A stretch of 64,000 bases of DNA, taken from contig NC_068982.1 in NCBI RefSeq assembly GCF_001194135.2, positions 186,177,195-186,241,194 on the forward strand. Direction: 5' to 3'. Shown here in pieces: positions 1,775 through 39,282 of this stretch. The notes under the pieces were generated by a model. The model was not told where the DNA came from, did no database searches, and saw only the letters and a list, made by a program, of their open reading frames with translations. This DNA is from Octopus bimaculoides (lineage: Eukaryota). The position numbers were made by a program, and so were the translations under genes. Positions within the stretch are counted from its first letter, which is position 1, and every line of letters begins with the position of its first letter.

Positions 1775-1809
1775 CTGCAAAGGAAAAAGAAAAAGTTAAT
1801 CAGAAACTA

Positions 1810-3453: not shown

Positions 3454-3567
3454 AGTTGATATGGCATTGACCAAACCATTTGTGATTTGATCTTGTCTCA
3501 TGTGTTTCACAATATCAAACTGTGTGGCTCTCTGTTTAGGGATGGTCATATCGGCAATTCTTTTCAA
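3454..3567 (-). CDS. POLR3B: RPC2 exon 11 ([38 protein letters not shown])
   Basis: tttcag / gtaaga, 114 nt. Confidence 0.97.
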
Positions 3568-3767
3568 CTGAAATAAATAAAGGATTTCTTTCAACAAAAC
3601 AGATAAACCCTTTTCACAGACAACCTGCCTGAAACCATGTCTGACTTTTATTATAAAAAAACCTTTAATTTTAAAATGTTCACCCTTACATCTAAACCTG
3701 CTGCAACTTAGGATTCAGAACCTCCTTAAGCAACAAACACCAGATTAATTATTATAAGGTTAGTGGT

Positions 3768-4631: not shown

Positions 4632-4817
4632 CTCACTGTTGAATTTCTTGAAAAGATCTTCAAAAAGCAAAGACAGCAACTGTCCAGCCATTTCTAACCG
4701 TTTGTTCCCATAATAATCACGATCATCCATCTTAATACTGGCTCCCTGGGTCATAATCACCCGCCTCACCATCAGGGCAAGGTACGCTGCCTTCACTTTA
4801 AAATTCCACTGGACTAC
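4632..4817 (-). CDS. POLR3B: RPC2 exon 10 (VVQWNFKVK...[32 protein letters not shown])
   Basis: tttcag / gtatgg, 186 nt. Contains the [15 protein letters not shown] signature. Confidence 0.98.
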
Positions 4818-4838
4818 CTGAAAAATAAATAATAAACA

Positions 4839-4914
<76 letters not shown>

Positions 4915-5498
4915 TTGCTATTATGCAAAACTGTTCCAAGTCCAAAACGTTGCTTTTTCAGAAAACAAAAAAATAGCATTACCATTCCTTAGTAAAACCG
5001 TTGTGCTACACTTTGACAATTTTTGACATCTTGGCATCTGAAACAACTGGAGATACGATAGTTTGACCAAAAAATAAATATTGAAAGGAAAATGCATTTG
5101 CCCAAATTTGGACATACAATAGTTTCACATAATAGCAATGTGGACACTAAACTCTGCTTACGAAGACCTGTTGAGGCAAGTGAAATCGAAATCGGACCAT
5201 ATTTGATGACTGGCACCTGTGCCAGTGGAGCACTAACAGCACCATCCGAGCATGATCATTGCCAGAGCAGCTGTCTGGCTTCCATGCTAGTGGCCCGTAA
5301 ATAGCACTATTTGAGCGTGATCGTTACCAGCATTTCTAACTTTCCAGACCTCAATCAAACCGTCCAACCCATACCAGCATGGAAAACAAACGTTAAACAA
5401 TGATGGTGGTGGTGGTGGTAATGATGAAATGCAGTGGATTTCAAAAGAAATATGGTAACAAAAGGAGTTAATAGTGAAATTGGAAATGAAAAACTTAC

Positions 5499-5615
5499 AG
5501 GAACATGAGCAAGAATCACACCATGTAGAATATCCCTAGCTTCTTCCAGTTTGCTTTTCTTTGGTTCGTTCCACATTCTGCGGACCCGCACTTTACTTCC
5601 GATGTACCTTAATGC
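5499..5615 (-). CDS. POLR3B: RPC2 exon 9 ([39 protein letters not shown])
   Basis: cttcag / gtaagt, 117 nt. Confidence 0.96.
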
Positions 5616-6779
5616 CTGAAGAATAAAACAGAGACAATATAAAACAACATGGCTGTGTGTGTGTGTGTGTGTCTTAGTTTTGGAATCGGTCCCTCATGTC
5701 ACTTGCATGTCATCATTTGGCAACATGAAGGGCACCTGGCTGTAAAACACTCAGAAAACACATCCAAGCCATACCAGCATGGAAAAGCAGACATGAAACA
5801 ATGATGATGATGATGATGATTGTGGTAGTAGTGGTGTTGATGACATTGATGGTGGTAGTGATGATGATGATGATGATGATGACAACAACAATGGTGGTGT
5901 GTCCTTCCAAATTTCTTTTTAAGAAGGTTACATGTGATATGAGAATAATTTGGCTGCTATTCCTTGCAAGAACAGCAATTGCAGAGAAAACCAACAAAAG
6001 TCAATTGGACAATCACAGAGAGAGAATACATTCAATTGATGTTCAGCTGAAGTTTTAGATGGGAAAATAAGAAAATGGGAGTGGAAATGACGTTTTGAGT
6101 ATTGATCTACATCGGAAAGAGAGGAAAAAGGAAGAAAAGGGGAAAGGAGCAGAAAGAGCCCAGAGAAAAGCATGGGTCTTGTGCATGTGTGTGTGTGAGT
6201 GTGTAGCATTGGCTGGGAAGATTATTGTCTTCTTGCTATGACATCATGATAATTGTAAATGAGGGTCACTGACATGCAAGCATTATCAAATAACAACCAT
6301 CCGTGGAAAACATGTCTGGCCATGAGAAAATATTGCCTTACTTGGAAAGAGACGAGGGCTGCTAACAGGAAGGCTGTCCAGTGGTAGTAAATCTGCCCTA
6401 ACAAATTCTGTCTGACCCATGTAAAGCAAAGTGGAGGCTCATGGCTTATGGTTAAGATGTTGGACTCATGACCATAAGATAGTGGTTTCGATTCCTGGAC
6501 CGGGTAATGCGTTGTGTTCTTGAGCAAAACACTTCATTTCAAGTTGCTCCCGTCCACTCAGCTGGCAAAAGTGAATAACCCTGTGATGGACTAGCATCCC
6601 ATCCAGGTGGGGAAATTATACGCCATGAAACTGGCCCTTATGAGTCAGGTTGATTCAGAAAAGTAACTTTTTAAAGCTTTACAGGTAAAGCAGGGAAAAG
6701 TAGATGTTAACACAAAGATGAATCCACCAAATGGGTTTTCTTATCAAGATTAGAAATCCATGTCGTTTCAAAGACTCAC

Positions 6780-6929
6780 CTGGTTACACGTATAGACCTG
6801 AGCTTTGTGGCATTCCTCCATACAAGGAGCAATCGATGCTAAAACCTCTTCTTCACAACCAATCATCTGGATAATTTCTTGGTCACACTCAATACCCATA
6901 CCTTTGAAGGCTATTGCAACAGGAATGTC
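6780..6929 (-). CDS. POLR3B: RPC2 exon 8 ([24 protein letters not shown]...VYTCNQ)
   Basis: ttgaag / gtgagt, 150 nt. Confidence 0.96.
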
Positions 6930-6952
6930 CTTCAAAGATAATACAAAAAAAT

Positions 6953-7569
6953 TACGGTTCTATATTTAAGAGATGAGGAATTATGGACATTATTTACACT
7001 ACTTACATTTGACGGATATTTGTCCTCATCTTGTTTGCCGTTAACCATACGTCATATGCCCATTGACATATGGCGTAGTGGTTAAGAGCGCAGGCTACTA
7101 ACCCCAAGATTCTGAGTTCGATTCCAGACAGTGACCTGAATAATAATAATTTTTTCATTTTTTTTTTTCATTTTATTTAGTTTCAGCTCATGAGCTGTGG
7201 CTATGCTGGGGCACCGCCATTTGGTGTTGCTACGTAATTTTACTTCACAAATGCTTTTCAGGAATTGACATTTGGTGCACGAGAGAGTTTGATGCAGCTG
7301 CCCTCATCTGCACCTCCTGCTGCGAAGTTGGTTCATCTGGGACACTTGACTGGAAGAGGTCCAGCTTTATTTTGAAGACACCTACATTCAACTCATGTAG
7401 GTCTCTCAGGTACTTCAGGAGGATATTGAAGAGCTGTGGACCTCTGAAGCCCAGGCTATTGCAGTATCTTGTCCTACATCTTCAACAACATCGAAAAATA
7501 CCTTAGGAATGAGAACCCAGGTTCGAAATTTCCCCAAGACACCTGAAGAAGGCTGGGGGAATATCAACC
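6953..7569. mobile_element. Same family, copy 2: head-to-head palindromic dimer, split by a LINE 3' end
   Basis: Minus tail 6953-7048 fused to a degraded inverted head (taaccatacgtcatatgccc); plus head 7070-7140 with A/B boxes; (AAT)n; then GACAC-CTGAAGA-A-GGCTG at 7538-7555, running into a gap. Confidence 0.65.
7165..7488 (-). mobile_element. CR1/L2-type LINE 3' fragment
   Basis: Reads ...GFRGPQLFNILLKYLRDLHELNVGVFKIKLDLF...PDEP, then tail GGCGGTGCCCCAGCATAGCCACAGCTCATGAGCTGAAACTA and an A-rich end. Confidence 0.75.
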
Positions 7570-7914
7570 NNNNNNNNNNNNNNNNNNNNNNNNNNNNNNN
7601 NNNNNNNNNNNNNNNNNNNNNNNNNNNNNNNNNNNNNNNNNNNNNNNNNNNNNNNNNNNNNNNNNNNNNNNNNNNNNNNNNNNNNNNNNNNNNNNNNNNN
7701 NNNNNNNNNNNNNNNNNNNNNNNNNNNNNNNNNNNNNNNNNNNNNNNNNNNNNNNNNNNNNNNNNNNNNNNNNNNNNNNNNNNNNNNNNNNNNNNNNNNN
7801 NNNNNNNNNNNNNNNNNNNNNNNNNNNNNNNNNNAAAACCCCAAGATTTAAACTGTTTGTATTTAATTTAAGCCCTTCTCCAGTTACCCCAACCCTCTCT
7901 TTTATAATGTGAGT

Positions 7915-8255
7915 AGCCACTTCTTCACTACAGTTTTCACTTCCTCATTACTGGACAATCATCTCTTCAGCCCCATGAAAAAGGGTTTGAGAGGCAAACA
8001 TTATTCCAGTGATGAAGAAGTGAAAACTGTAGTGAAGAAGTGGCTCAAAGAACAGTCAACAGAATTTTACGGGGCAGGGATACATGCTCTCATTCGAAGG
8101 TGGAACATTGCTATTGAGAGAAACGGTGACTATGTTGAGAAGTAGGGATGTGACCCACAGAGGACCAGCTTCATTTTGATGTATGATACATGTTCCTGTG
8201 TTGGTAATTATACCTGTCCTAAACAAAATGGCATTACTTTTTGACTCACCCTCAT
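7915..8255 (+). mobile_element. Mariner 3' end with a fold-back at the truncation point
   Basis: NHLFSPMKKGLRGKHYSSDEEVKTVVKKWLKEQSTEFY...RWNIAIERNGDYVEK; right TIR TACTTTTTGACTCACCCTCA-TA. Confidence 0.88.
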
Positions 8256-8405
8256 AAATTAAACTGAGAAGAAAAAGTAAACCTTTAATCTTTTATGACA
8301 GATTTAAACTATTTCGATTATAAATTAAAATGGTTGCACACAAAATTGTAAACATTATTATGTTCTGAAATAGCAATAAAAAGACCAAGTTATTTCTTTA
8401 TTTAC

Positions 8406-8487
8406 CTCAGTAAAAATATTATGTTTCAGGTAATATCTACTCTGTTTGGTTATAACATATGTCTTACTTTTCCTCTCATGGGTGGAA
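8406..8487 (-). CDS. POLR3B: RPC2 exon 7 (STHERKSKTYVITKQSRYYLKHNIFTE)
   Basis: ttttag / gtaaat, 82 nt, phase 2 to 0. Confidence 0.95.
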
Positions 8488-8515
8488 CTAAAAATGAAAA
8501 AAAAAAAAAAATCAA

Positions 8516-8549
<34 letters not shown>

Positions 8550-9822
8550 TAGGTGTTTCGTTTCTGTATTTGGCTTGCAAGATTCTCAATGTGGACGCTT
8601 GTGTTAAAAAACAAAACTTGTATATTAGAAATGTCATTACTCCTGTAATAACAAATACATACACAGTGTGTGTGTTTATTATTATTGGCGTTATGACCCT
8701 CCCAAAACACAACAAGAATAATTAGATAAAAATCAATAATGGTTAAAATCTATAAAATGGTCGATAATTTTAAGATTTATCTCCTTTTAAACCTGGCAGC
8801 CAGAGTAAGGGAGATAACTAGTGTCTGAAACTAAGCTCCACATCCAAATTGACACAAGAGGGCGAGGGATGTATGTGTGGTTCAGAAATTCACTTCCCAA
8901 ACACGGGGTTTCAAGTTCATTCCCACTGTGCGTCACCTTGGGCAAGTGTCCCTGAGCAGACCAAAGCCTTGTAAGTGGATTTAGTAAGCAGGAACTGAAA
9001 GAAGCCATTAAATCTGCCATACCATTCAATTTGACTGGTATATTCTGCCCAGAATATTCTGTTATATGTATCCTAGCCTCTAGACCAGTGGTTCTCAATC
9101 AGGGTCCACATGACCCTTGGGGATCCATATAAGAGTTTGTTGTTATGTGCAATAAATTGCTTATACACAAAATATTTTAACAGTTTCTAATACAATTCCG
9201 GCTGGAGGCATGTTAAAAGCGCCCACTACACTCTCGGAGTAGTTGGCATTAGGAAGGGCATCCAGCTGATGCAGTGTAAACGCACCCATACCGGAGCTGT
9301 GTAAATGCACCCATGCTGATGCTGTGTAGATGCACCCTTGTCGGTGCTGCATAAATACACCCATGCCAGTGGTATGTAAAAAACACCCTGTCCAATCTGT
9401 TAAGTGGTTGGCATTAGGAAGAGCATCCAGCTGTAGTAACCATGTCAAAACAGACAATTGGAATCTAGACAGCCCCATAACTCCGTGTCAAACGTCCAAC
9501 CCATGCCAGCATGGAAAGCAGACATTAAATGACAATGGTGATGATGGTGATGAACTCCCCTGGGTCCACGAAACAAAATCCCAGTCAAGTTGTGGCTTCC
9601 AATTCTTTTCTCTTTTAATATTGGCAAAATTACATTTTGAAAGGGTCACAGGGACTACCCAGTGTTCCTTTAGTTCCAAGAAATGAAGGAGGGTTGAATG
9701 AAGGGCTACTAGCAATCCTTTCCCGTCTAGCACCCTACAAAAATCATCCAAAGAAACCGGGGACAGCCAATATAGATGGACCAATGTGCCATACAAACAA
9801 GAAAGAGGTGAGAAATCCTTAC

Positions 9823-10032
9823 CTTGTTACGGAACATTCTATATAACCCTTTTTGTCAATGTCTACAATCATTCGATTCTTAGACATTTGTTCTTGGATG
9901 AGAATCACTTTCTCTGTTCCTTTTACAATAAAATACCCTCCTGGGTCCATTGGACATTCTTTCAACTTGGCCAGCTCTGATGGACTCTTTCCAGTCAATA
10001 CACAATTAGAACTTCTCAACATGATCGGCATT
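9823..10032 (-). CDS. POLR3B: RPC2 exon 6 ([10 protein letters not shown]...[20 protein letters not shown]...CSVT)
   Basis: ttctag / gtaagg, 210 nt. Contains GGYFIxxGxEKV. Confidence 0.98.
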
Positions 10033-10818
10033 CTAGAATAAAATAGAAACAGATAAGATTAATGTGTAAGGTTCATAGGTGCAGGCAGGAGTGTGTGGAT
10101 AAGATGCTTGCTTCCCAACCACATGGTTCCAGGTTCAATCCCACAGCATGGCAACTTTTACTATAGCTCAAGGCCAACAAAAACCTTGTGAGTGGATTTG
10201 GCACATGGAATCTAAAAAGAAGCTCTGTCTCTCTCTCCCTTCTTGTCTTGACATCGTTGGAGAGTTACAAGCAAGCATCACTGCCAAACCAGTGGAATTA
10301 ACTGTTTCCAGTCTTTTGCGAAAAATGCATCTGGCCATAGGGAAGTATCTCCATGCGGGGAAACAGGTGAGGGTTGGCGACAGGAAGAGCATCCCTCCGT
10401 AGGAAATCTGTCTCAACTAATTCAATCTAAGTGTATGTGTCTCAGTGTCTGTGTTTCAGTGTGTTTGTGTTTCTGTGCGTGCGTGTTTCTCTGTGTGTGC
10501 GTGTGTTACTCTGTGTGTGCATGTGTTTCTCTATGTGTAAATATGTTTCTGCGTGCGTGTGTACATACGTATGTGTTTCTGTACCCTTGTCTTGCCATCA
10601 TGACATCAAGTGGTGACTTAAAACGAGTGTCACAGTCATACAAGTGATCCTGTTTCGTTTCCAGTCTGCCACAAAGAAATATCAATCTGAAAACTAAAGA
10701 ATTACAAACCTAATCATCATCGTCATCGTTGTTTAACGTCCGCTTTCCATGCTGGCATGGGTTGGACGGTTTGACTGAGGCTGACCTCTCCGATCAAAAT
10801 AAATTTAGTTTAGTCTTA

Positions 10819-10941
<123 letters not shown>

Positions 10942-11888
10942 TTACAATTATTTAATATCATCATCATCATCATCGAAACTGAACCAAATTTGATGACTGG
11001 CACCCAGGCCAACCTTCCCTCATTGGACACTAAACTCAGCTTGCGAAGACCTGTTGGGGCAAGTGAGATCGAAACTGAACCAAATTTGATGACTGGCACC
11101 TGTGCCAGTGGGGCGTTAACAGCACCATCCAAGCAAGATCACTGCCAGAGCAGAGGTCTTGCTCCCATGCTGGTGGAACGTAAAAAGCACCATTTGAGCG
11201 TGGCCGTTGCCAGTACCACCAGACTGGCTCTCGTGCCAGTGGCACGTAAAAAGCACCCACTACACTCTCTGAGTGGTTGGTGTTAGGAAGGGCATCCAGC
11301 TGTAGAAACTCTGCCAAATTAGATTGGAGCCTGGTGCAGCCATCTGGTTTCACCAGTCCTCAGTCAAATCATCCAACCCATGCTAGCATGGAAAGCGGAT
11401 GTTAAATGATGATGATGATCATCATCATCATCATCATTGTTTTAACGGTCACTTTTCCATGATTTCGTGGGTCAGACAGAATCTGGTGAGGCAGATTTTC
11501 CACAGCTAGACACCCTTCCTGTCGGGAACCTTCACTTGTTTCTAAGTAAGGTAACCTTTCCCCAGGGTCCCACATCTTTTTATTGAAAGGCTGGAAATGA
11601 AGGACACCACTTGCATGAGGGTAAACAATCACATGATGTCAAAACCAAGAAACACACAAACACAAGACGGGCTTCTTCTAGTTTCTCACAATGAAATCTA
11701 CTCACAAGGCTTTGGTTGGCCCAGGGCTATAGTGGAAGACACTTGTCCCAAGATGCCATGCAATGGAAGTGAACCTGGACCCATGTGGTTAGGAAATGAA
11801 TTGCTTAACCGCACAGACAGACCTCTATCTGTGTGGATGTTTTTTAGAGTAAGTACACCATACCCCTGGATGTCAGGATAGGCAACTA

Positions 11889-12418
11889 CAAGGGGATGTT
11901 GAAAAGTTCCTGGCTTTAAGGGTATCATGAAAGGCCTGGTTGGAAGCCCAACCTTCAAAGTTCTTTTACAGGGCTTAGAGAAACACTAAAGGACCATTAC
12001 AATAAGTGTGTGCATCTGAGAGGGGAACATGACATTCGAGCGAGTTCGTTGCCAGTGCAGCTGGACTGGCTCCTGTGCAGGTGGCACGTAAAATACACCA
12101 TTTNNNNNNNNNNNNNNNNNNNNNNNNNNNNNNNNNNNNNNNNNNNNNNNNNNNNNNNNNNNNNNNNNNNNNNNNNNNNNNNNNNNNNNNNNNNNNNNNN
12201 NNNNNNNNNNNNNNNNNNNNNNNNNNNNNNNNNNNNNNNNNNNNNNNNNNNNNNNNNNNNNNNNNNNNNNNNNNNNNNNNNNNNNNNNNNNNNNNNNNAT
12301 GCCAGCATGGAAAGCGGACGTTAAACGATGATGATGATGATGATGACGAAAATTATAATTAACTGATCCTGCTGCATTTGCTTTTACCCAAAGCCAGGAA
12401 CTTTTCAGCACTCCCTTG
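11889..12418 (+). mobile_element. Mariner deletion derivative (MITE) interrupted by an RTE tail
   Basis: TIRs CAAGGGGATGTTGAAAAGTTCCTGGCTTT / AAAGCCAGGAACTTTTCAGCACTCCCTTG, TA on both sides, internal KDHYNKCVHLRGEH. Confidence 0.88.
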
Positions 12419-13184
12419 TAAAAGATTTGGAGTCAAGACTGACATTTCACGGTAAAATGCTGCCTTAAAAAACCCATCCACTCCTTATTGAAGAGAAAAT
12501 AAAAGTACTTTTGTGTTTGCTTTGCAAAATTGTTGATGTGAACTCTAGTCATCATCATCATCGTCATTTAAGATCTGCTTTCCATGCTGGCATGGGTTGA
12601 ACGGTTTGACCAAGAGCTGGCAAGCCAGGAGGTTGCTCCAGGCTCCAATTTGATCTGGCAAGGTTTCTACAGCTGGATGCCCTTCCCAGTGCCAACCACT
12701 CTGAGAGTGTTGAAATATATTTTGTCATATCTTGGGAGGGTTCTATACCAAAAATACAAACACACACACTGGACACATGATGTTAAATGGTGATGATGAA
12801 TTAGTTAGCCATTTAACTGATTGATTGCTTAATTAATCATTCAACTAATCAATCAGTACCTAATTAATTGATTGAACAAACATACAATTAAGCAAGTAAT
12901 CAATCGGTTAACTGGTGAAATAGTTAACCAACTGACAAATAAAAAAAAATAGAAAATGAAATACAGCCAGTGTGTGTGTTTATTATTGGCATAATGACCT
13001 TCCCAAGATACAAGATAATAATATAATCAGTAAAAAAACTGGTATTCATTATGCTTCTTAATTTATATTTAAATGGTTCCAATTTTTAAAAAACTTCTCA
13101 CAGAAATAAAAAGCAGAAAATTGAAAAATACAATAAAAACAGAAAAAAACGTGATATTTTCAGAAATTTGTAGAATTTACTTAC

Positions 13185-13260
13185 TTCTTGTGGAGAAACT
13201 GGTTTCGTTATATTGAATCCTTCTTCAACATCAGGCATTCCAACATATATATTTAGGTAT
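13185..13260 (-). CDS. POLR3B: RPC2 exon 4 ([25 protein letters not shown])
   Basis: ttttag / gtaagt, 76 nt, phase 2 to 0. Confidence 0.96.
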
Positions 13261-14630
13261 CTAAAATAAATATATTTTTGAAGGAAAGAATAAATATCAA
13301 AATGTTTCAATCACTGAGGAATANNNNNNNNNNNNNNNNNNNNNNNNNNNNNNNNNNNNNNNNNNNNNNNNNNNNNNNNNNNNNNNNNNNNNNNNNNNNN
13401 NNNNNNNNNNNNNNNNNNNNNNNNNNNNNNNNNNNNNNNNNNNNNNNNNNNNNNNNNNNNNNNNNNNNNNNNNNNNNNNNNNNNNNNNNNNNNNNNNNNN
13501 NNNNNNNNNNNNNNNNNNNNNNNNNNNNNNNNNNNNNNNNNNNNNNNNNNNNNNNNNNNNNNNNNNNNNNNNNNNNNNNNNNNNNNNNNNNNNNNNNNNN
13601 NNNNNNNNNNNNNNNNNNNNNNNNNNNNNNNNNNNNNNNNNNNNNNNNNNNNNNNNNNNNNNNNNNNNNNNNNNNNNNNNNNNNNNNNNNNNNNNNNNNN
13701 NNNNNNNNNNNNNNNNNNNNNNNNNNNNNNNNNNNNNNNNNNNNNNNNNNNNNNNNNNNNNNNNNNNNNNNNNNNNNNNNNNNNNNNNNNNNNNNNNNNN
13801 NNNNNNNNNNNNNNNNNNNNNNNNNNNNNNNNNNNNNNNNNNNNNNNNNNNNNNNNNNNNNNNNNNNNNNNNNNNNNNNNNNNNNNNNNNNNNNNNNNNN
13901 NNNNNNNNNNNNNNNNNNNNNNNNNNNNNNNNNNNNNNNNNNNNNNNNNNNNNNNNNNNNNNNNNNNNNNNNNNNNNNNNNNNNNNNNNNNNNNNNNNNN
14001 NNNNNNNNNNNNNNNNNNNNNNNNNNNNNNNNNNNNNNNNNNNNNNNNNNNNNNNNNNNNNNNNNNNNNNNNNNNNNNNNNNNNNNNNNNNNNNNNNNNN
14101 NNNNNNNNNNNNNNNNNNNNNNNNNNNNNNNNNNNNNNNNNNNNNNNNNNNNNNNNNNNNNNNTTATCGGTCTCTTTTGCCAAACTGCTAAGTTACAGGG
14201 ACGTAAACACATCAGCATCGGTTGTCAAGCGATGTTGGGAGGACAAATACAGGCACACAAACATATACACACACGTACACACACACACATATATGACGGG
14301 CTTCTTTCAGTTTCTGTCTACCAAATCCACTCACAAGGCTGTGGTCGGCCCAAGGCTATAGTTGAAAGACACTTGCCCAAGGTGCCACGCAGTGGGACTG
14401 AACCTGGAACCATGTGGTTCGTAAGCAAGCTACTTACCACACAGCCACTCATAAAAATATAATAGAATTTTTTAAAACAATGAATGGCTATGAGGGTCCA
14501 TCCGAGTTCAATGGGAACCAAAGGGGTCCCCAGGAAAAAGACAGTTAAGGACCATTGACTTAAGTCATAACAGAATTCTAACTAAAAGGAAATACTTGAA
14601 TAATTTGTAAAAGTTCATTAACAGACTTAC

Positions 14631-14695
14631 TTCAGATAAAAGTTCAAGTCAACATCACTAACAACTTTATCATTGGCCTTCATGATTTTCTTAAT
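14631..14695 (-). CDS. POLR3B: RPC2 exon 3 (IKKIMKANDKVVSDVDLNFYLK)
   Basis: ttccag / gtaagt, 65 nt, phase 0 to 2. Confidence 0.95.
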
Positions 14696-15539
14696 CTGGA
14701 AGCAAAAAAAAATGACGATTAAAAAATATCTGTTAATTAAAATCACAATTATAACATAAACGATTTCAGATCTAAATGATGATTGTGAATAAGATTTCAA
14801 AGATATTCATTTTTAAACTCCTTGATACAAGTAGGTTATATTAAACATAATTTAAAAGAAAAATTTGAAATCTGTCATTATATATATGTGTATATATGCA
14901 TGCATCTTGCACAGGCACATGCAAAATGAACATCCACATACACGCCTATTGCTCTTTAAAGGCCCAGTTAAGAGTACCCTTGATGCGTCATGCGATATGA
15001 TATGCTTGAGAAGACCTGTTGAGTCAAGTAAAATTAATATCATAGCTGAGGCCAGTGCCCCCAGACGGGCTCCTGTGCCGGTGGCACGTAAAAAGCAACA
15101 TCTGAATGTGATCAATGCCTGGCCCACCTGATTGGCTTCTGTGCTGGTGGTACATAAAAAGAACCCACTACACTCTTGGAGTGGTTGGTGTTAGGAAGTG
15201 CACGCAGCTGTAGAAATTTTGCCAGATCAGATTGAAGTCTGGTGCAGCCTCCTGGCTTCCCAGACCCCAGTTGAACCGTCCAACCCATGCCAGCATGGAA
15301 AACGGACGTTAAACGATGATGTTGCTAGTACTTGGAGAAAGGGGTGCCATAAATGGTCTCCCATAACCATTTATCTGTCCTCAGGGGTATGAACAGTAAA
15401 ATAAGTGCTGATAGTATTTGATCTGGGATGCCACCAAACACCATTACAAGACGGTTTGGCAGTCTTGTTGACCAGCTGAAGATCAGAAATGAGTAACTGT
15501 GAATACTGGAAACCAGAGCATTTCGGTTATAAAATATTA

Positions 15540-16260
15540 AAGGATAATTTATGTATATTGAGTCTTGTAATTTATTGCATCTAATGAACCAACAGATATA
15601 TATTTTTGTGTTCCTTTCTGTGGAAGAGCGTAGGCTCGAAACGTTAGACTTTTTCAATTCCCAAGCGTTATACTAATACAACTGTTTGTTTTCTACACTG
15701 CTTGTCTTTGTTGGGGGGTTTTTTGTGAATTCTCTCTATATACATATATATATATCATCATCAACATCATAGAATTAAGATTGAATGAATGTGGTGATAT
15801 CTAAGGTATGTTAGTTCCCAAACAACACTTATTTTAGTGCTGTTGACACTGCTGGATTGAATGGTACTGCCCAGGTGTCAAAACCATAATGATATCTGTG
15901 GGGCAGCTGATGATGGCAGTATGTTGGATTGTTGGTATTGTATGTGTGGAATAGTTTTNNNNNNNNNNNNNNNNNNNNNNNNNNNNNNNNNNNNNNNNNN
16001 NNNNNNNNNNNNNNNNNNNNNNNNNNNNNNNNNNNNNNNNNNNNNNNNNNNNNNNNNNNNNNATATATATATATATATATATATATAGTAAGAATTTACA
16101 AAAAAACAAAAGACAAAGACGGGTGTGTGAACAACAAACAGATGTATTACTTTCAGGAAGTGAGAAAGTCTTTTACGTTTTGAGCCTACGCTCTTCGACA
16201 GAAAGGAACACAGAAATAAACAGGGAAAGAAAATAGAAAAAGGTATACTGACTAGTGATC
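15540..16260. mobile_element. Inverted pair of a third Penelope-like repeat with variant hammerhead core
   Basis: Plus copy CTTT-CTGTGGA-A-GAGC-GTAG-GCTC-GAAA-CGTT (15614-15645); minus copy CTTT-CTGTCGA-A-GAGC-GTAG-GCTC-AAAA-CGTA-AAAG (16205-16170). Flanks homologous over about 170 bp. Confidence 0.55.
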
Positions 16261-16997
16261 TATCATATATATATATTGAGAGAGAAAGAGAAAGAATTTT
16301 TTTTGTTAGTAAAGCTGAAACTGAGACTTTGTTTCGCAACTCAAGTTTCATGCCACTGCAATCTTCAGGCAAGAACTGTAGCATAACACTATCGCAAGAC
16401 AAACTCTTACATTCAGTTTCAATAAAGTAACTATCTTCTCTACATGTATTGAGCACTATTCTCACGTATAACATCCATGCTGGCATGGGCTGGATGGTTT
16501 GACAGGATCTGAAGAGCCTAATGACTACATCATACTCCAATTGTCTGTTTTGGCATAGTTTCTATAGTGCAATGTCCTTCCTAATGCCAACCACTTCATG
16601 AAATGTACTGGGGTTACAAATTCATTTGCAAGACAAAGACTTCTCAGCTGAGAGAGGGAGTGGAAGTGGGGGAAGTGGCTGTGTGCCAGGAGAGAGTTTA
16701 GAGTATAAGAGGGACAGAGACAGTTGTCTTACTAGAAAGGAGATACTTGACTGCTTTAGCGGGACAAAGAAGAAGAGAAAAGGGAGAAAGAGACACACAT
16801 ACACCACAGGGCTTTTCTCAGTTTCCATCTACTAAAGGCTTTGGATGCGCTGTGGCTTTCGTAGAAGACGCTGAAGGTGCCACACAGTGAAACTGAACCC
16901 AAGACCACATGGTCACCAGGCAAGCATCTTAACCATACAGCTATGTCTCTACCTATAACAAGGTTAACAAGATTAATTAATGTAAAACTATGCATAC

Positions 16998-17087
16998 CTC
17001 TACATTAATGAAGTAATTGAAGGAATCTATATGTTGTTTCACTAATCCTTTCACCTTCAAAAAAGCTGGAAGCAGTTTCCATTTGTC
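16998..17087 (-). CDS. POLR3B: RPC2 exon 2 ([30 protein letters not shown])
   Basis: ttttcag acceptor, gtatgc donor, 90 nt. Near-identical to the conserved RPC2 motif [25 protein letters not shown]. Confidence 0.97.
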
Positions 17088-17240
17088 CTGAAAAAAAAAC
17101 AAGAAAAATGAATAAATTATGATGGAGAAAATCACTTCAAATGAAACAAAAAGTAAATCCTACCAGAGTTATCTTTCCTTTAATCTTGAGCTCTGTAGAA
17201 CCAAAGACTAAATTCAACCAGTTTGATATTCTTTGGCTTT

Positions 17241-20822: not shown

Positions 20823-21420
20823 AAAATAGTTAAAATATCTTCTTAGTATATCATATGAAAGTTCATTAGTTGAACTATTAGTCCTCTTGCATTCTGGTGG
20901 GTATCGGAGCGTTTGAGTTACATTAGACCCCAACAAACGCGCATCTGTCTGGACCACGATCTTAGCCTGTCGACCTGTGCCTGACGGCCACGATCGTGGC
21001 CCGTCGTGCTTTATGTGTTAATTATTTGATAGATATAGATTAAGACAACGGAAACAGATTTATTGTGGTATAAGAATATATCTTTTATTTCTTTCAGTCA
21101 CTAAATTGCGGCCATGCTAGAGCACTGCCCTGGAGAATCTTTTTAATAGAATGAATCGACCAAATATTTATTTTTTTAAGCCTGGTACTTATTCTAGCCT
21201 TCAATTTTGTCGACTGCTAAGTTACGGGGACGTAAACACACCAACACTGGTTGTCAAGCGGTATTGGGGGACAAACACACACACATACATACATACATAC
21301 ATACATACATACGTACGTACGTACGTACGTACATACAAGCCCAGCCCAATGTGCCACGCAATGGGACTGATCCCGGAACCATGTGGTTGGGAAGCAAGCC
21401 TCTTACCACACAGCCATGCC

Positions 21421-22470
21421 ATGTACAGGGATGCTGTCAGTAAGGTGAGGGTTGGCAATGAGTACAGTGAAGAATTCCAGGTAGGGGTAGGGGTCCACCA
21501 AGGATTAGTCCTCAGTCCCCTCTTATTCATCATTAGTCCTCCAGGCAATAACAGAGAAATTCAAGACAGGATGCCCCTGGGAGCTCCTCTATGCTGATGA
21601 CCTTGCTCTCATTGCTGAGTCACTATCAGAACTTCAGGTGTGGAAACCAGGTCTAGAATTGAAGGGCTTTGAAATCAATCTAGCAAAAACCAAAGTCTTA
21701 GTAAGTAGGAAGGCAAACAAATCACAAATCCCTTCAGGTAGATGGTCCTGCTCAATCTGTAGAAAAGGCATAGGTAGAAACTCCATAAGATGTACCTGGT
21801 GTAAGCTATGGACACACTTCAACGGTGCTTGTTACATGCTGGCATACAGCAATATCAAAGGAAGGCTAACTGGGAAGATAGTTTTGTGTGTGACAACTGC
21901 TCAAGGGCAATAAGCACTGGAAATGTGCAGAAAACAGCTTCCATCACATGCCAGGGGGGGAAACTAGAAGTAGGTGATAGCTTCAGTTACCTAGGTGACC
22001 AAGTCAGTAGCAAGGGTGGATGCTCTGTGAGTGTAGCTGCTAGAATAAGAATAGCCTGGGCAAAGTTCAAAGAGCTCCTACTATTGCTGGTAGTAAAAGG
22101 TAGACTGTATGACGCATGTGTGCAAACAGCCATGCTATATGGCAGTGAAACATGGGCCGTGACTGCTATGAACATGCGTAAGCTTGCAAGGAATGAAGCC
22201 AGTATGCTTCGCTGGATGTGTAATGTCAGTGTGTGTACACGACAGAGTGTAAGCACCCTGAGAGAAAAGCTGGACATAAGAAGCATCAGATGTGGTGTGC
22301 AAGAGAGAAAACTGCGCTGGTATGGTCATGTGTTGCATATGGATGCGGACAGCTGTGTGAAAAAGTGTCACACCCTAGCAGTAGAGGGAACCTGTGGAAG
22401 AGGTAGACCTAGGAAGACATGGGATGAGGTGATGAAGCACGACCTTCGAACAGTGGGCCAATTTAGAAAT
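21421..22470 (+). pseudogene. RTE-clade LINE reverse transcriptase 3' half, frameshifted
   Basis: GVHQGLVLSPLLF, LLYADDLALIAES, FSYLGDQV, LYGSETW, LRWYGHV, GRGRPRKTW. Confidence 0.93.
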
Positions 22471-24540
22471 ACATATAAGGGAGACAACAAGTGTTGGCTT
22501 ATTGTCACTTAAACAGGAGTTATTTCCCCATACACCATACTGCTGAAATTCATCAACACTATATATATTTTTTTTATCCGATGTTCTTGGCAGAAACGTT
22601 AGCACGCCGGGCGAAATGCTTAGCGGTATTTCGTCTGTCTTAATGCTCTGAGTTCAAATTCCGCCGTGGTCGACTTTGCCTTTCATCCTTTCGGGATCCA
22701 TAAATTAAGTACCACTTGCATACTGGGGTAGATTTAATCGACTGGCCACCTCACCGAAAATTTCGGGGCTTGTTCCTGGAGTAGAAACGGATATTCTTGA
22801 GACTTTAAGGGTTTCGGATTTAGAAATGAGTGGATATTTGACTCTATGAAATGAGAGTTTAGGGAAGTTGCCCAAGTCTAAAACGCTGTTTATTTCTCAA
22901 AAGAATTTATAACATATAATAGCTAACACTTCCGCACGGGGAAAGAAAACGGACATAGAATGCGAGGGTGGCGATGTAAAAAAGAATTTTAATATTTCAT
23001 AACAAAGTTTTTCACAATCATAACTCCCGTTGTATGGAACACGTGAATATTTACAAACGAAGCAAACAATAAATTCCTTTTCTCTTTTTCCTTCTCCATA
23101 AAGTAGTAATTACTTTTCCGAAAATCCGCGGCCATTTTACAGAAACCAGGCGCCAACCCAGTTACAAACATGTGAGTCTCTCAATGGAAAGCTTCGCTTT
23201 TCACTAAAACAGATCCGGAATTTTCATTTTCGTCCAACCCAGACAGGATGACGTTGCTTCACAACAACTGGGCTTCCTAGGAATTTTCCGAGTGCTTTCT
23301 GGAATTTTCCATTTGTATCAGCTCTCTATGTTTCAGATAAAGGATTATCAGCTGTTACGATTTATAGCAGAGGCACAATGTCACAGCTGTTGGTGAAGAG
23401 TGGAGCCAGTCCTATCAACTCCACTATTTGACAAACTAGGATTTATATTACAGACATTGGAAAGATGACTGCATGTATGTGTGTGTATGTGCAGTTCAGC
23501 AAAAGAGACTGATGGAGTAAGTAGTGGGCTTACAAAGAATAAGTCCTGGAGTCAATTTCTTCAACTAAAAAGGCGGCGCTCCAGCATGGCTGCTGTCAAA
23601 CAACTGAGAGGAATGAAAGAATATAAGAACGTGTGTGTGCATGTGTGTGTTCTGTGTGTATGTGTGTGCATGTGAGTGTATGTGTGTGTATGTGTGTTTG
23701 TGTCTGTGTGTGTGTGTGTGTGTGCGAGCTTTGTGGCGTGTGTGTGTGTGTGTGCATGTTTATGTGTGCATATGTCTGTGCATGTGTGTACACATTTGTG
23801 TGTGTGTGTGTGCACGAGCTTTGTGCATGTGTGTGTGTGTGCAAGTGTGTAAATATATACATACTTTAGGGTGCTGGTGGCACATAAAAAGCACCCCTTA
23901 CACTCTGCAAAGTGGTTGGTGCTAGGAAGGGCATCCAGCCATAGAAGCCATATTGGAGTCTGGACAGCTCCTGTCAAACCGTCCAACCCATGCCAGCATG
24001 GAAAACAAATGTATGATGTATGATGATGATGATGGTACATTCATTCAAGCTTTTTGTGTCATCAGTTTTCACAATCCTTTCTGCAGATGTTTTAAGCTGT
24101 TTTCCCTTAGGAAATACATTTCATTCTATTGATGTCATTCTGTCTTCTTGTAAATAAAACTGAGAACTTCCTTCCGTAGGAAGGAAATGGGGAAATCTTT
24201 CAACTTAAAGAACAATCCATGTTGCTATGATGATGGTGATAGAGGGCATGACTGCGGCTGCAGAGTTGGCGTTGACAGCAGCGGCGGTGGTGGTGGTGGT
24301 GGTGATATTGGTAATGACGATGTTATGGCTGTAGTTGTGTTGTTGTTGTTGTTGGAGGTGGTGGTGGTGGTGGCAGCGGTAGTGGCTGTGGTGGTGGTGT
24401 ACCAGCTGAACGCTGGGGTTAAGGCAATCAACTTACTCCTATCTTAAAATTGCTGTTCTTGTGCCAAAATTTGAAACCAATATAATTAATTAATTAATTA
24501 ATTATAAGGCAATGAGCTAACAGAATTTTTTTTACAAGTC

Positions 24541-25744: not shown

Positions 25745-26215
25745 CAAGGATGGTGCGGTACCAAGCATTGTGGTCAGCAGTCTGGGGGATCTACCAGTGG
25801 GGGGGGGTCAATATTACAAACTGTCACAGTCTTTTTTAGCATGTCTTTATACCATCCCTTGAGCGCCAGAAAGCAATTCTCTGTGGGCCACAATCTTTGG
25901 CAGGTGATGGTCAACTATCCTGAAGACATATCCCATCCAGCAGAGTTGTGTCTTCCTAAGAATGGCCTTGATATTGGTGGTCTCGGCTTTCTCCAGGACG
26001 CCTGTGTTGGTGACATAGTCAGTCCAGTGGATATTTGATATGGTGCGCAAACAGCATCAGTAGAACCTCTCCAGGAAGCAGGTGTGACACCGATACAGGA
26101 GCCATGGCTCAGAGGTGTGGCAGTAAGTGGAAAGAACTGGAGACCAGCAAACGCTGAACATTGTCTCTGTTTTCAGTTTGTTATTTCTCCATACCTTGTC
26201 TTTAAGTCTCCCAAA
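25745..26215 (-). pseudogene. RTE (BovB-like) RT C-terminal fragment
   Basis: GRLKDKVWRNNKL, SEPWLLYR, IHWTDYVTNTGVLEKA, QLCWMGYVFR in ORF track frames. Confidence 0.85.
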
Positions 26216-26680: not shown

Positions 26681-27404
26681 TTTTTACCTGTCTACAAACA
26701 CAGCCAGGCTGAAATAATTAATGCATTCTTCCAGGAGTGAATAAAAAAATTCTCAAACTTGAAGAGATGGGCCCCTTAGATACTAACATGGGCCCCTATA
26801 TAGAGAGATTCTTATGGCGCAGCGGCTCACTTGCCATCGGGCAAGCTGGCATCCACCACTCACTGACTCATACACACATGCCTCTACACAGCTGGTACAA
26901 CTTATCGAGTCAACCTAAGTTTTCTCACACGACCAGGATTCACAGCCAAACAATAGAAGCACTAAATACCACCACCACCGCCGCCGCCACCATCACAGCT
27001 GCCACCATCACTACCGCCATCTCCACCACCACCAGACATGTATTCAATACTATTAAAGCGATCTTGAAAAGATTGTAGTAACGTGACTGTGTCAAGGTTG
27101 ACTCTTTGAACGTATAATTTGGTGTGACGTTAATACTAATTATGAGCCAGTCTCTGCGCTGTATAGGGAAACCGCTGAGACAATACCAAACTTGTTACGT
27201 TTGTTTGGTTTTGTAATGTCTGAAGGTCTCGTATATACACGCACGCATGCATGCACGCATACACACGCACGCACCAACAAACAAACAAACAAATTAACAC
27301 ACTGACACATATATGTCCCAGACTGGCAGTGTAAATGTCGCTATTTTGAGAAGCCTATAGCCATGGTGTGTGCAAGAGATCGAGGAAAACAGATGTTGGA
27401 TGAT

Positions 27405-27602
27405 GATGATGATGATAGCTAGCTAGATAGACAGATAGATAGATAGTCAGACAGACAGACAGATAGAGATAGCTAGATAGATAGATAGATAGACAGACAG
27501 GCATAGCTAGATAGATAGATAGCTAAGTAGATAGACAGGTAGACACGTAGCTAGCTAGCTAGCTAGATAGATAGATAGACAAAAACAGACTGAGAGACCG
27601 AC

Positions 27603-27636
<34 letters not shown>

Positions 27637-27640
27637 GATA
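27405..27640. repeat. Compound GATA/GACA/GCTA microsatellite
   Basis: Direct reading. Many other (AT)n, (CA)n, (GAT)n tracts throughout the window. Confidence 0.95.
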
Positions 27641-27819
27641 GGCTTCTTTCAGTTTCCATCTACCAAATCCACTCCCAAGGCTTCAGTTGGCCCAAGGCTA
27701 CAATAGAAGACACTTGCCCAAAGTGCCACGCTGTGGGACTGAACCTGGAACCATGTGGTTGGGAGGCAAGCTTCTTGCTACACAGTCACACCTGCACCTA
27801 TGTATACCATTTCTATACT

Positions 27820-27885
27820 TACCTATAACTTACCTATGACTTCCCTATGACTTCCCTATACTTACCTATGACTTACCTATGACTT
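27820..27885. repeat. 11-bp tandem repeat (TTACCTATGAC), about 6 units
   Basis: Direct reading. Confidence 0.85.
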
Positions 27886-28158
27886 GATTGTTAGTGCATT
27901 GTTATGGATGGCTAATCAATATTTATGTATATTTATTGGATGACTCATTCATCATCACACGACTTCATTGTTGAGGATGGCATTAGTCAACATTTACATA
28001 GAGGAATAGTCGTGTGGTAACAGGTTTGCTACCCAACCACAGGGTTTTTGGTTCGATCTTACTGCATGGAACCTTGTCTTCTACTATAGTCCTGGGCTGA
28101 TCAAAGCCTTGTGAGTGAATTTGATAAATAGAAACTTAAAGAAGCCAGTCAAATTATC

Positions 28159-28740
28159 ATATGCTAGACCACTGGTTTTAATTGATTAATATCAATTTCT
28201 ACCCTTATTAATAAATTTTAAATAATGATGTTTTCAAACCGGTAAATTAGCTGCAAAAATTTGTTAACTGCAGGGTTATTTCCGGACTTAGCGCGTCAGA
28301 TTGAAGACATTTGAAGGGATACACTGAATGTAATTTGTAGAACTCTACACATGCTCCCTTTCGGGTGGATGTCTTGTGTCTAGTTCTGGAAATTATATTT
28401 TATAAATCGACAGACTACGCTGATGATCCTGCAGATATTTACTTATGTAAATTTTAACAGGTGAAACCATGGTACGTAGGTTAATCGTTTTTTTTTTATT
28501 TAGTATTTTTTCATTTGTCTTGCCCTTTTACAGTCTGTTGTGTCGCTAGATTTTTACTGAGAACATATTTTTCATGGTTAGATGATTCAGCATCTATTTC
28601 TAGCATATAGGAGTCCACTTTTGCTGGTCATTCCTCTTATTTGTGTATGTAATATAATTTTAATCTTCGGATTTTTTTAATATGCTAGACCACGGTTTTA
28701 ATTGATTAATATCAATTTCTACCCTTATTAATAAATTTTA
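28159..28740 (+). mobile_element. Terminally redundant 521-bp non-coding unit carrying the hammerhead (Penelope pLTR / retrozyme-like)
   Basis: Direct repeats 28159-28220 and 28680-28740 (one 1-nt indel), central ribozyme, no ORF in the track. Confidence 0.65.
28415..28479 (+). ncRNA. Minimal type I hammerhead ribozyme motif
   Basis: Stem I CTACG/CGTAG; core CTGATGA (28420-26); stem II CCTG/CAGG extended by ATTTAC/GTAAAT; GAAA (28463-66); palindromic stem III ACCATGGT; GTA cleavage triplet (cut after 28474). U.U mismatch at the base of stem II. Confidence 0.75.
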
Positions 28741-28746
28741 TATATA

Positions 28747-28887
28747 CACTAGCGTAGCTAGAGTGTGTGCCACCTGGAGCAGCCCTTCCGTTTGCTGCCA
28801 CTGCTGGACCCCACAAAGAACAATTATTGCTTACAGCAGACCCAAAAGTGTCACCCTATTAAAAGTGACCCTCTAGCTATGCTAGTG
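28747..28887. mobile_element. About 140-bp MITE (second copy inverted at about 39025-39185)
   Basis: TIR CACTAGCGTAGCTAGAG / CTCTAGCTATGCTAGTG; shared internal CAGCAGACCCAAAAGTG. Confidence 0.7.
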
Positions 28888-28919
28888 TAAAAAATGCACA
28901 CACACACACACATATATAT

Positions 28920-29050
28920 ACGTAGTCTGATCAATAAGTATCCGGACTGTTTCTATAGTAACGAAGCTAAAGCATGGAGAGCGAAACTGCTCAGCACGGA
29001 TTGACCTTGAACCCTACTGCACATGCACACTAAGTTTTAACGTAAAGAGC
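28920..29050 (+). mobile_element. Mariner-like left end
   Basis: TA-CGTAGTCTGATCAATAAGTATCCGGAC resembles mariner TIRs; partner TIR not seen. Confidence 0.55.
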
Positions 29051-29445
29051 ACCATTCAAGCGTTGAGCCTCACGGAGGCAAAGTGGCTGAGCTCCTTTTG
29101 AGCGTTGGGCCTCATGGAGACAATGACCAAGACCAGTGGCATTATGTTGTACTTGAGAAGAAGACCCATCAAACTGAGCAAAATGGCAGTTGTGGCAGAT
29201 ACCGGTGTCACGCAAATGACACCCGTGCCAGTGGAATGTAAAAGCACCCATTACACTCTTGGAGTGGTTGGCGTTAGGAAGGACATCCAGCTGTAGAAAA
29301 CCATGCCAAATCAGACTGGAACTTGGTGCAGCTTTCTAGCATACCAGCTCTGGTCAAACCGTCTAACACACGCCAGCATGGACAATGGATGTTAAATGAT
29401 GACGATAATGATGATGATATATAGATAGATAGATAGATAGCAAGC

Positions 29446-29477
<32 letters not shown>

Positions 29478-32949: not shown

Positions 32950-34735
32950 ATTCAAAAGTCCTGTGGTGATGGGAAGGTGGTGAAGCATGCAGACCTGACG
33001 GGTTGGAAGCATGTAGTCAGCGACCTGCACGTAGGCGGCCCATGCTAGATATAAAGTCGTCTCCTTGTCGCCCAAGACAGTGGTAGGATTCGGTTGCCTC
33101 ATGGGTGTCTGAGCAGCTCCATTTGGAGAGGGCACTGCTCACCCGGAGGCCAGAGAGGTTCTAGAAAAGGTGAACCAAAAATTGCCTGTATTTCCATATC
33201 TGGTCAGTTTAGCACAACTGACGGATGTCCACCCTGCACTCGAAAAACAAAGAGTCTTTTATTTATCAAATCTGGTCAGAACTTGAACATTTCATGTTGG
33301 AATGTGCGCACTCTGTTGCACAACAAGAGTGATTGTAGGCCTGAAAGATGCACTGCACTTGTTGCTCGTGAGCTGAACCGTTATAAAATTGATATAGCTG
33401 CACTCTCAGAGACTCATATAGAAGGCGATGGTCAGCTTGAGGAAGTAGGAGGTGGATACACCTTTTTTTGGAAAGGAAGGCAGAAGGAGGAGCACAGAGA
33501 GGCTGGTGTTGGTTTTGCAGTCCGATCTGATATCCTTAAGAAGTTGGAAGAGCTCCCTGTTCCTATAAATGAACGTATAATGACGCTACAGTTGCACTTG
33601 AAAGGTATGCAGTTTGCTGCTCTAATAAGTGCCTATGCACCTACTTTGACTAGCTGTGATGAAGATAAAACAATCTTTTATACCCAGCTGAGAGCCATAC
33701 TTAGAAAAATCCCCAATTCTGATAAAGTCATTCTACTGGGGGATTTTAATGCTAGAGTTGGAACAGACTGGCAAACATGGAACTCTCTAGGACGTTTTGG
33801 AGCNNNNNNNNNNTTCTGATAAAGTCATTCTACTGGGGGATTTTAATGCTAGAGTTGGAACAGACTGGCAAACATGGAACTCTCTAGGACGTTTTGGAGC
33901 AGGGAAAATGAATAGCAATGGTCTCATGCTACTGGAGCTTTGCGAAGAACATGGACTTTACATCGCAAGCACTCATTTTATGCACAAAGGTGATCAAGCA
34001 ACAACGTTGATGCATCCAAGGTCCAAAGTCTGGCACTTGCTGGATTATGTCACCATCCGCAAGCACGACATTTGTGACATTTATAATGTCAAGTCCTTCC
34101 ATGGATCAGAATGCTGGACAGACCACAGTCTGGTGCGAGCAAAGTTCCGAATGGTAATTAGAGTGAAAGAGAGAAGAGGACCAGTCAGTATTCCTCGCCA
34201 TCTAAATGTCCACAAGGTATATGATGTTGTGGTTAGGAAAGAACTTCAGACTCGCTTGTCCAGCATTGAAACTGCTGCAGCATGGGAGGATTTTTGAGAC
34301 CGGGTTCTACAATGTGCAGCCGAAACCCTGGGATATGTTACTGCCAAACACAGAGGCTGGTTTGATGAGAATGATGCTGAAGTTCAGCAACTATTGATGG
34401 TAAAGCGCCATGTTCACAGTGTATTGCTACACAGAGAACTGTCTACTGTGCAGCGAAGTCTAGCACTTGCCCACTATAACAGTGTAAAATCACTACTGCA
34501 GCGATCTCTCAGGAAGATGCAGAACACTTGGTGGGAGGATCTTGCTCGTGATGTTCAAGCTGCTGCTGATGCAAATGACAGCAAGAAACTTTACCATCTT
34601 ATGAAGCGAGCTTATGGACCTAAGAGCTCCACATCAGCTCCATTGCTTTCCAAGGAGTCTTCCACCCTGTTTACTAAATCAACAGAAATCACAGGTCACT
34701 GGATCGAACACTTCTGCTTCTTGCATTTCTGCTTC
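32950..34735 (+). mobile_element. Young RTE (BovB-like) LINE: 5' UTR, APE endonuclease and linker; runs into gap
   Basis: CWNVRTL, IDIAALSET, GYTFFWKG, GVGFAV, SAYAPT, VILLGDFNARVG, LLDYV, TDHSLV. One in-frame TGA at 34295-34297 once the overlap around the 10-N gap is removed. Confidence 0.95.
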
Positions 34736-38890: not shown

Positions 38891-39282
38891 CACACATACT
38901 CATACACATACATGCACATATATACATACACATATGCATACACTCATATACACACACACTCATATACATATATGTATGGCGCCATCATGGGCACAGGAAC
39001 GTTTCATTATATATTCAGTGTATATCTAGTGTAGCTAGTGGGGTGGTAGGGACGGTCTGCCCAGGCGGCACTTTTAAAAGGGCACCACTTTTGGGTCTGC
39101 TGTAAACAATATGTATTTTTGTGGAGTCCTGGGGCGGCAAACGGAAGTGCCACCCCGGGCGGCACACACTCTAGCAACGTTAGTGATCTCACCCACTGTA
39201 CTGTAGGTGTTAACGATGTGTAAAAACATTTCTAGAGAGTTTAAGTAAAAAATGTTGTTCATTCCAATCTCTATTATTTATT

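Follow-up and report, generated by a model that had tools for sequence, protein, structure and literature searches.

The window analyzed here, the whole 64,000-nt (64-kb) stretch of DNA whose numbering is used throughout, is eukaryotic scaffold sequence interrupted by 14 N runs, with 38% G+C and a dense load of microsatellites, members of a SINE family, and fragments of LINEs. On its minus strand, exons of RPC2/POLR3B (the second-largest subunit of RNA polymerase III) occupy positions 101-17093, with 63 to 94% exon-level identity to the protein of the limpet Patella vulgata and to an unnamed ENA protein; matches to the exon concatenate covered at most 422 aa, at no more than 57% identity. This resemblance suggests a molluscan host, though not a cephalopod in particular. 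The segment of interest, 582 bp of non-coding DNA at 28159-28740, lies ∼11 kb beyond RPC2 exon 2 and is therefore situated either in RPC2 intron 1 or upstream of the gene, with its ribozyme motif antisense to it. Other mobile and repetitive sequences surround it closely. A SINE-like family of ∼150 bp, in which ARAGORN recognized no tRNA-like head, is represented at 27641-27783 (+), 28003-28154 (-), and more than 15 other sites, and an inverted SINE pair makes up a ∼500-bp foldback directly to the left of the segment. The neighbor on the right is a MITE of the Tc1/mariner type. Its termini are 22-nt inverted repeats that agree at 20/22 positions, it is flanked by a TA duplication, and a second copy of it with 80% identity is found at 39069-39185. 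Simple repeats, namely (TAGA)n, an 11-bp minisatellite, and (CA)n(TA)n, occur nearby at 27400-27640, 27802-27896, and 28895-28922, and a separate array with a 20-bp period is located at 54629-54996. Fragments similar to a LINE reverse transcriptase (RT) in its C-terminal part map to 21151-22512 (+) and 25850-26056 (-); Pfam searches with the ORFs tested at these fragments returned no RVT match, and no GIY-YIG/Penelope signature was seen in them. The features of the locus are as follows.

28003-28154, minus strand: SINE copy adjoining the left end of the unit, outside the element (more than 15 copies in the window, 70 to 87% identity)
28159-28220, plus strand: upstream partial copy, corresponding to the last 62 nt of the unit and identical to 28680-28740 except for one indel
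28221-28740, plus strand: full non-coding unit of 520/521 nt with 32% G+C, delimited by the 521-bp period between repeats
28415-28479, plus strand: type-I hammerhead motif, recognized from the sequence, a descriptor scan, covariance model R1, and folds
28474-28475, plus strand: predicted self-cleavage site GUA/C between A17 (28474) and C1.1 (28475), placed by its position relative to the core
28680-28740, plus strand: downstream terminal-repeat copy forming the 3′ end of the unit, from the repeat comparison
28747-28887, no strand assigned: MITE of 141 bp adjoining the right end of the unit, outside the element, recognized by its inverted repeats and second copy

The segment is bounded by direct repeats of 62 nt (28159-28220) and 61 nt (28680-28740), which differ by a single indel, one additional T in the left copy (CCACTGG versus CCACGG), and are otherwise identical. 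The repeats can be extended to 28154-28224 and 28675-28744 if a few mismatches are tolerated, and the downstream copy includes the local palindrome AATTGATTAATATCAATT. Their start-to-start period is 521 bp, with 459 bp between the two copies. In the 64-kb window, the 28159/28680 pair is the only near-identical local direct repeat that is neither SINE, microsatellite, nor gap adjacent. The terminally redundant unit makes up 0.9% of the window, and the hammerhead motif falls inside it, in the unique central part and outside the repeated ends. The G+C content of the unit (0.32) is below that of the window (0.38), and none of its ORFs reaches 45 aa. A stretch of 61 to 66 nt of the unit's 3′ end thus lies directly upstream of a full unit, in the arrangement of a partial tandem. 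The locus holds 1.12 units and one hammerhead, not an array of two or more hammerhead-bearing units. In its few hundred base pairs, low G+C content, and lack of an LTR, a primer-binding site, and a polypurine tract, the unit has the format of a non-LTR retrozyme. Two readings fit the upstream repeat: it may lead a partial tandem as its 5′-truncated copy, or it may be the left one of the two copies in a 61-bp target-site duplication; both ends of the unit adjoin other transposons, and therefore no target duplication can be read at them.

Three other origins of this architecture were considered and rejected. An assembly artifact would resemble the exact 87-bp duplication at 33717-33803 and 33814-33900, which flanks the 10-N gap 33804-33813 within an APE-type LINE ORF (PF03372, E 3e-11) and almost certainly arose where overlapping contigs were left unmerged during assembly; unlike that duplicate, the 61- to 62-nt repeats have no gap between them. 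A longer array split by the SINE or the MITE was discarded because no unit-like sequence was present beyond either of them. Finally, ARAGORN gave no match in 27000-29470, and a tRNA-derived element was rejected.

The motif at 28415-28479 (+) reads CTACG-CTGATGA-T-CCTG-(26 nt)-CAGG-T-GAAA-CCATGG-TA/CGTAG, where the slash marks the predicted cut. Its parts, all on the plus strand, are listed below.

28415-28419, plus strand: helix I, 5′ strand, CTACG
28420-28426, plus strand: catalytic strand CTGATGA (CUGAUGA)
28427/28462, plus strand: U.U opposition at the base of helix II
28428-28431 and 28458-28461, plus strand: helix II strands CCTG and CAGG
28432-28457, plus strand: imperfect 26-nt hairpin extending helix II
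28463-28466, plus strand: GAAA
28466-28473, plus strand: ACCATGGT
28474, plus strand: A17
28475-28479, plus strand: helix I, 3′ strand, CGTAG

The invariant hammerhead core is complete, comprising C3 U4 G5 A6 N7 G8 A9, G12 A13 A14, the A15.1-U16.1 pair (A28466-U28473), and an H17 that is not G. Helix I is open and helices II and III are closed, which is the type-I layout. Helix I consists of 5 bp, with 3 bp more past a bulge, and helix II of 4 bp plus its extension, while helix III, the palindrome ACCAUGGU at 28466-28473, amounts to 2 to 3 bp. The G10.1-C11.1 pair that closes helix II is absent, and U28427.U28462 stands in its place. An earlier note on this DNA, made from the letters alone, had described a non-coding 521-bp unit with 61- to 62-bp direct repeats, which proved exact to the base. 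It had also read the two catalytic strands, a 5-bp stem I, an extended stem II, a palindromic stem III, and a GUA site, and all of these are present as claimed; our placement of the cut from the conserved core arrives at the same position, after 28474. Its suggestion that the U.U pair may weaken this copy did not hold up: the pair does not indicate decay, and the axolotl family HHR_Amex2, with ∼60,000 copies, has the U.U mismatch and self-cleaves (PMC7229834). By analogy with that active family, of which it is a trait, a U.U at 10.1/11.1 is not disqualifying.

To judge how often such a motif would arise by chance, both strands of the window were scanned with a descriptor comprising CUGANGA, GAAA, UH, and three helices, in which the first helix-II pair was allowed to mismatch. 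The scan retrieved 28415-28479 (+) and one much weaker site, 16334-16372 (-). Over 400 dinucleotide-preserving shuffles, motifs as good as the former (helix I of at least 5 bp, helix II of at least 4 bp, and helix III of at least 3 bp) were expected 0.005 times per window, and those of the weaker class 0.175 times. In JGI metagenomes, the exact string CTGATGA-N25-45-GAAACCATGGTAC was found in 44 contigs, none of which (0/44) had helices I and II; these contigs showed no similarity to the unit and were used as negative controls. The specific pattern gave 0 matches in JGI metagenomes, and the IMG/VR pattern scan also gave 0. Rfam hammerhead models did not match at the gathering score in the window or at E≤10 in the 701-nt and 96-nt sequences, and the search with all Rfam families returned chance matches only. 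One of them, a bacterial S4-Fusobacteriales ribosomal-protein leader at 28251-28308 (+), reached 26.5 bits (E 0.021), well short of its gathering score of 48.8; in a eukaryotic scaffold it was taken as chance, and the region forms a local hairpin.

We then built a covariance model, R1, from four animal retrozyme hammerheads that self-cleave experimentally (coral Amil224, mussel Mg353, and axolotl Ax353 and Ax330; PMC7229834, supplementary table 2), using the textbook structure and excluding the window sequence. With default filters and both strands searched (128 kb), its sole match was 28414-28480 (+), at 20.6 bits and E 0.0013, covering all 44 model positions with a 27-nt insertion in loop 2. 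On 294 kb of metagenome control contigs (588 kb of strand), the best R1 score was 14.7 bits, never at the pattern sites. A sequence-only model of the same four-seed alignment, R2, found no match in the window at E≤10; the R1 score therefore depends on base pairing, the helix sequences differing from those of the seeds. As the only R1 match in the window, the motif is credible as the type-I hammerhead of the animal retrozyme/Penelope kind that had been proposed for it. When the filters were turned off, the 28415-28479 site scored 13.5 bits, tied with 16332-16374 (-), in a 61-nt alignment from which three helix-I pairs were deleted; this drop presumably reflects the maximum hit length of R1, which would clip helix I around the 27-nt insertion. 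The competing site, which lies within an RPC2 intron in sense orientation, is a compact hammerhead-like string, UUGC-CUGAAGA-U-UGC-AGUG-GCA-U-GAAA-CUUGAG-UU/GCGA, with a 4-bp helix I, a 3-bp helix II on a U.U base, and a non-palindromic helix III. It reached its 13.5 bits (E 0.16) with filters off only and gave no match with default filters. It is probably a chance string, since its E value of 0.16 agrees with the 0.175 expected per window.

Folding predictions point to a dimeric mode of action. The minimum-energy fold of a single RNA (-15.6 kcal/mol) has helices I and II and no stable helix III, and constraining the monomer to the hammerhead costs 4 kcal/mol more. In the cofold of two copies, the double hammerhead is itself the minimum-energy structure, at -40.2 versus 2 × -15.6 kcal/mol; in it, ACCAUGGU pairs between the two molecules over 8 bp and helices I are swapped. 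These predicted folds support action as a dimer via the palindromic stem III, as the earlier note had anticipated. The unit RNA as a whole folded more stably than shuffled versions of it, with z scores of -5.2 and -4.5 (linear) and -4.8 (circular) for the plus strand and -3.4 for the minus strand. A z of -4.5 was reached by 4/43 background windows of 520 nt (9%), so the stability of the unit is unexceptional for this genome and counts as weak support.

A search for relatives of the unit covered the window, sequence collections, and candidate partner ORFs. No second unit copy was detected in the 64-kb window by blastn with a word size of 7. All eight stop-free peptides of the unit were concatenated and used as a query against 5.8 billion proteins, including transcriptome-derived contigs, and nothing was obtained at E≤1; ten window ORFs were likewise absent from the protein collection searched. 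An autonomous Penelope ORF sharing the repeat had been suggested as a check. Neither the stop-free segments of at least 60 aa near the unit nor the long ORFs of the window included an RT/GIY-YIG Penelope ORF, and the retroelement ORFs scanned in the window, including 33055-34294, are APE-type LINEs.

Taken together, we consider the hammerhead to be probably genuine by descent, a predicted ribozyme, and hold this with good confidence. As to the element that carries it, the reading that we prefer, at somewhat better than even chances, is that 28159-28740 is a dead-end daughter copy, longer than one unit, of a Penelope-mobilized, non-coding element of the retrozyme type. Insertions of Penelope-like elements are 5′ truncated and form partial tandems in which a full copy has a truncated one beside it (PMC8557442, PMC8969392, PMC11167929); AT-rich or microsatellite DNA is preferred, and the RT begins within a multi-copy RNA template (PMC8557442, PMC8969392, PMC11167929, PMC3846280). 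A copy of more than unit length, 5′ truncated and in partial tandem, is therefore a published Penelope-type signature, which is in keeping with the idea of the earlier note that the terminal redundancy is a footprint of reverse transcription. Because a 521-bp period is too short for an RT-EN ORF, we infer that the template was a non-coding multimer or circle rather than an autonomous element.

Such an element might work as follows. Master loci in the form of tandem arrays at other genomic sites would give rise to multimeric transcripts. Helix III is short (2 to 3 bp) but palindromic, and two ribozymes could pair through ACCAUGGU as a double hammerhead and cut after GUA, after which a host ligase may circularize the unit-length RNAs. 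A Penelope-like RT acting in trans could copy the multimeric or circular template. Synthesis would begin at 28740-28744, where the unit has its 3′ end, in DNA rich in AT and microsatellites, and would end 61 to 66 nt into the next unit, which would leave the terminal redundancy. TATATA closes the full unit and, if the TA-flanked MITE at 28747-28887 is discounted, adjoins (CA)n(TA)n. With one ribozyme in 1.12 units, the locus cannot itself release a 521-nt unit-length or circular RNA; a single cut, made in trans with other transcripts, is the most that the copy at 28159-28740 might undergo. The self-cleaving circular RNA (circRNA) family postulated by the earlier note thus finds no support in this one copy. 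A wider version of the preferred reading is put forward tentatively, and we regard it as doubtful: an undescribed mollusc, possibly cephalopod, retrozyme family may exist with an unusually long 521-nt unit and a dimer-dependent hammerhead that has a U.U pair and a 12-bp extended helix II and would be convergent with HHR_Amex2, its RNAs being circularized and copied by a Penelope RT in a rolling-circle manner that would generate insertions of more than unit length.

Three other explanations compete with the daughter-copy reading. It is unlikely that we are dealing with a chance hammerhead-like string in an unrelated local duplication or unclassified repeat, with neither a ribozyme nor a retrozyme involved. 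The shuffling expectation of 0.005 in the window and the R1 E value of 0.0013 both speak against coincidence, and so do the location of the motif within the window's only clean terminally redundant unit and the lack of the helices in all 44 chance core strings. The palindromic helix III, the U.U opposition, and GUA are, moreover, all as in the validated ribozyme family HHR_Amex2. What chance has in its favor is the silence of the Rfam hammerhead models, the single copy in the window, the missing canonical G10.1-C11.1 pair, and the equal 13.5 bits that unfiltered R1 assigns to 16332-16374 (-); besides, 0.005 per 64 kb would translate into hundreds of relaxed-descriptor matches in a gigabase genome.

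The remaining two accept the hammerhead and differ about the element. One takes 28221-28679 as a 459-bp hammerhead-bearing, SINE-like retroelement and the repeat as host DNA in a 61-bp target-site duplication, so that no sign of a circular or multimeric template would be left. The geometry of repeat, insert, and repeat fits this equally well, the repeat is AT rich like Penelope target DNA, and target duplications of animal retrozymes are reported to exceed 4 bp when present. Nevertheless, documented Penelope duplications measure 8 to 10 bp or are absent (PMC8557442, PMC8969392, PMC11167929, PMC3846280), which would make 61 bp exceptional, and members of this class normally occur as partial tandems; as weak evidence, the 459-nt insert alone has a z of -2.7 versus -4.5 for the 520-nt unit including the repeat. 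We judge this explanation very improbable. Still lower in our estimate stands a severely 5′-truncated remnant of an autonomous Penelope-like element (pLTR, hammerhead, and tail), which would imply no independent non-autonomous family. Dispersed mini-hammerheads are indeed mostly single motifs from truncated elements, and Penelope hammerheads share the long helix II, the 4- to 5-bp helix I, and the extra base after A9 (PMC4209133); retrozymes are themselves related to pLTRs (bioRxiv 10.64898/2026.07.22.740005). The 521-bp period, however, is far below the ∼2.5 kb of an RT-EN ORF, and the template was thus not a coding tandem. The stop-free segments of at least 60 aa around the unit also lack RT/GIY-YIG, the retroelement ORFs of the window being APE-type LINEs, and helix III, which is missing from the mini-hammerheads, is here of the canonical retrozyme type.

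The class, the ribozyme type, the Penelope link, and the presence in molluscs of non-LTR retrozymes are already published. If genome-wide copies confirm the daughter-copy reading, hammerhead retrozymes would be extended to another mollusc lineage, and the motif would represent a second, independent dimeric hammerhead of the U.U type, so far documented in salamanders. The 1.12-unit insertion would then be a natural record of a Penelope-type RT copying multimeric or circular templates. A single copy adds little until the family and its RNAs are shown.

Small non-coding repeats with one type-I hammerhead of weak helix III each are known from newt satellite 2, Schistosoma Sm-alpha, and cave-cricket pDo500; several of these ribozymes act as dimers, the repeats are high copy, either in tandem or dispersed, and cleavage has been demonstrated. 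Whereas these systems, all three of which PMC4209133 cites, are high-copy and cleaving, the element described here is known from one genomic copy.

The closest likeness is to axolotl Rtz_353/HHR_Amex2 (Cervera & de la Pena 2020, PMC7229834), which likewise is of type I and combines CUGAUGA, a U.U at the base of helix II, GAAAC, and GUA in a non-coding unit of a few hundred nucleotides; cloned Rtz_353 reads CUGAUGA-U-GCC..GGC-U-GAAA-CACGUG-UA/, with the cut at the slash. HHR_Amex2 RNA was 22% cleaved in one hour as a monomer and far more efficiently as a dimer (PMC7229834). Helix III of HHR_Amex2 is 2 bp with the palindromic tetraloop ACGU, here CAUG, and the G/C core of helix II numbers 3 bp in the axolotl and 4 bp here. 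The differences lie in the helix II loop (a 26-nt extension here versus a 5-nt loop), in the 5-bp helix I, whose sequence is unlike that of HHR_Amex2, and in everything outside the ribozyme, where there is no similarity. In the axolotl, 350-bp units form long tandem arrays with demonstrated cleavage and circRNAs, whereas the 521-bp unit is known from the sequence of one 1.12-unit copy. The non-LTR retrozymes of the mussel Mytilus galloprovincialis (PMC7229834) are also AT-rich non-coding repeats with one type-I hammerhead, whose helix III is palindromic as well (ACGCGCGU). Unlike the motif described here, the mussel hammerhead closes helix II with the canonical G10.1-C11.1 pair, its loop 2 is short, its triplet is GUC, and it cleaves as a monomer; its units of 350 to 390 bp, in ∼5000 copies with abundant circRNA (PMC7229834), show no detected sequence similarity to the 521-bp unit.

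The minimal hammerheads of Penelope pLTRs (Cervera & de la Pena 2014, PMC4209133) share with this motif a helix I of 4 to 5 bp, a long helix II, the extra U after A9, palindromic helix-III positions, and the dimer mode, and they too are mostly dispersed single copies inserted as partial tandems. They usually lack helix III and keep G10.1-C11.1, described as highly conserved in them (PMC4209133), whereas helix III is present here and U.U replaces that pair; furthermore, they lie inside the repeated pLTR beside an RT/GIY-YIG ORF, in contrast to the unique central position of the present motif, near which no such ORF was found. Plant LTR retrozymes (Cervera et al. 2016, PMC4918200) are also non-autonomous, with RNA that is cut by hammerheads and circularized. 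Their type-III hammerheads in two LTRs, primer-binding site, and polypurine tract are all absent from the unit, as are their 4-bp target duplications and Gypsy mobilization (PMC4918200). Animal non-LTR retrozymes are now seen as non-autonomous derivatives of Penelope elements, among which "monomer" copies are common (bioRxiv 10.64898/2026.07.22.740005). It is to these "monomer" retrozyme derivatives of Li et al. 2026 that the 28159-28740 locus corresponds at best, with a period of 521 bp that falls within the 51 to 972 bp reported for retrozyme units (bioRxiv 10.64898/2026.07.22.740005).
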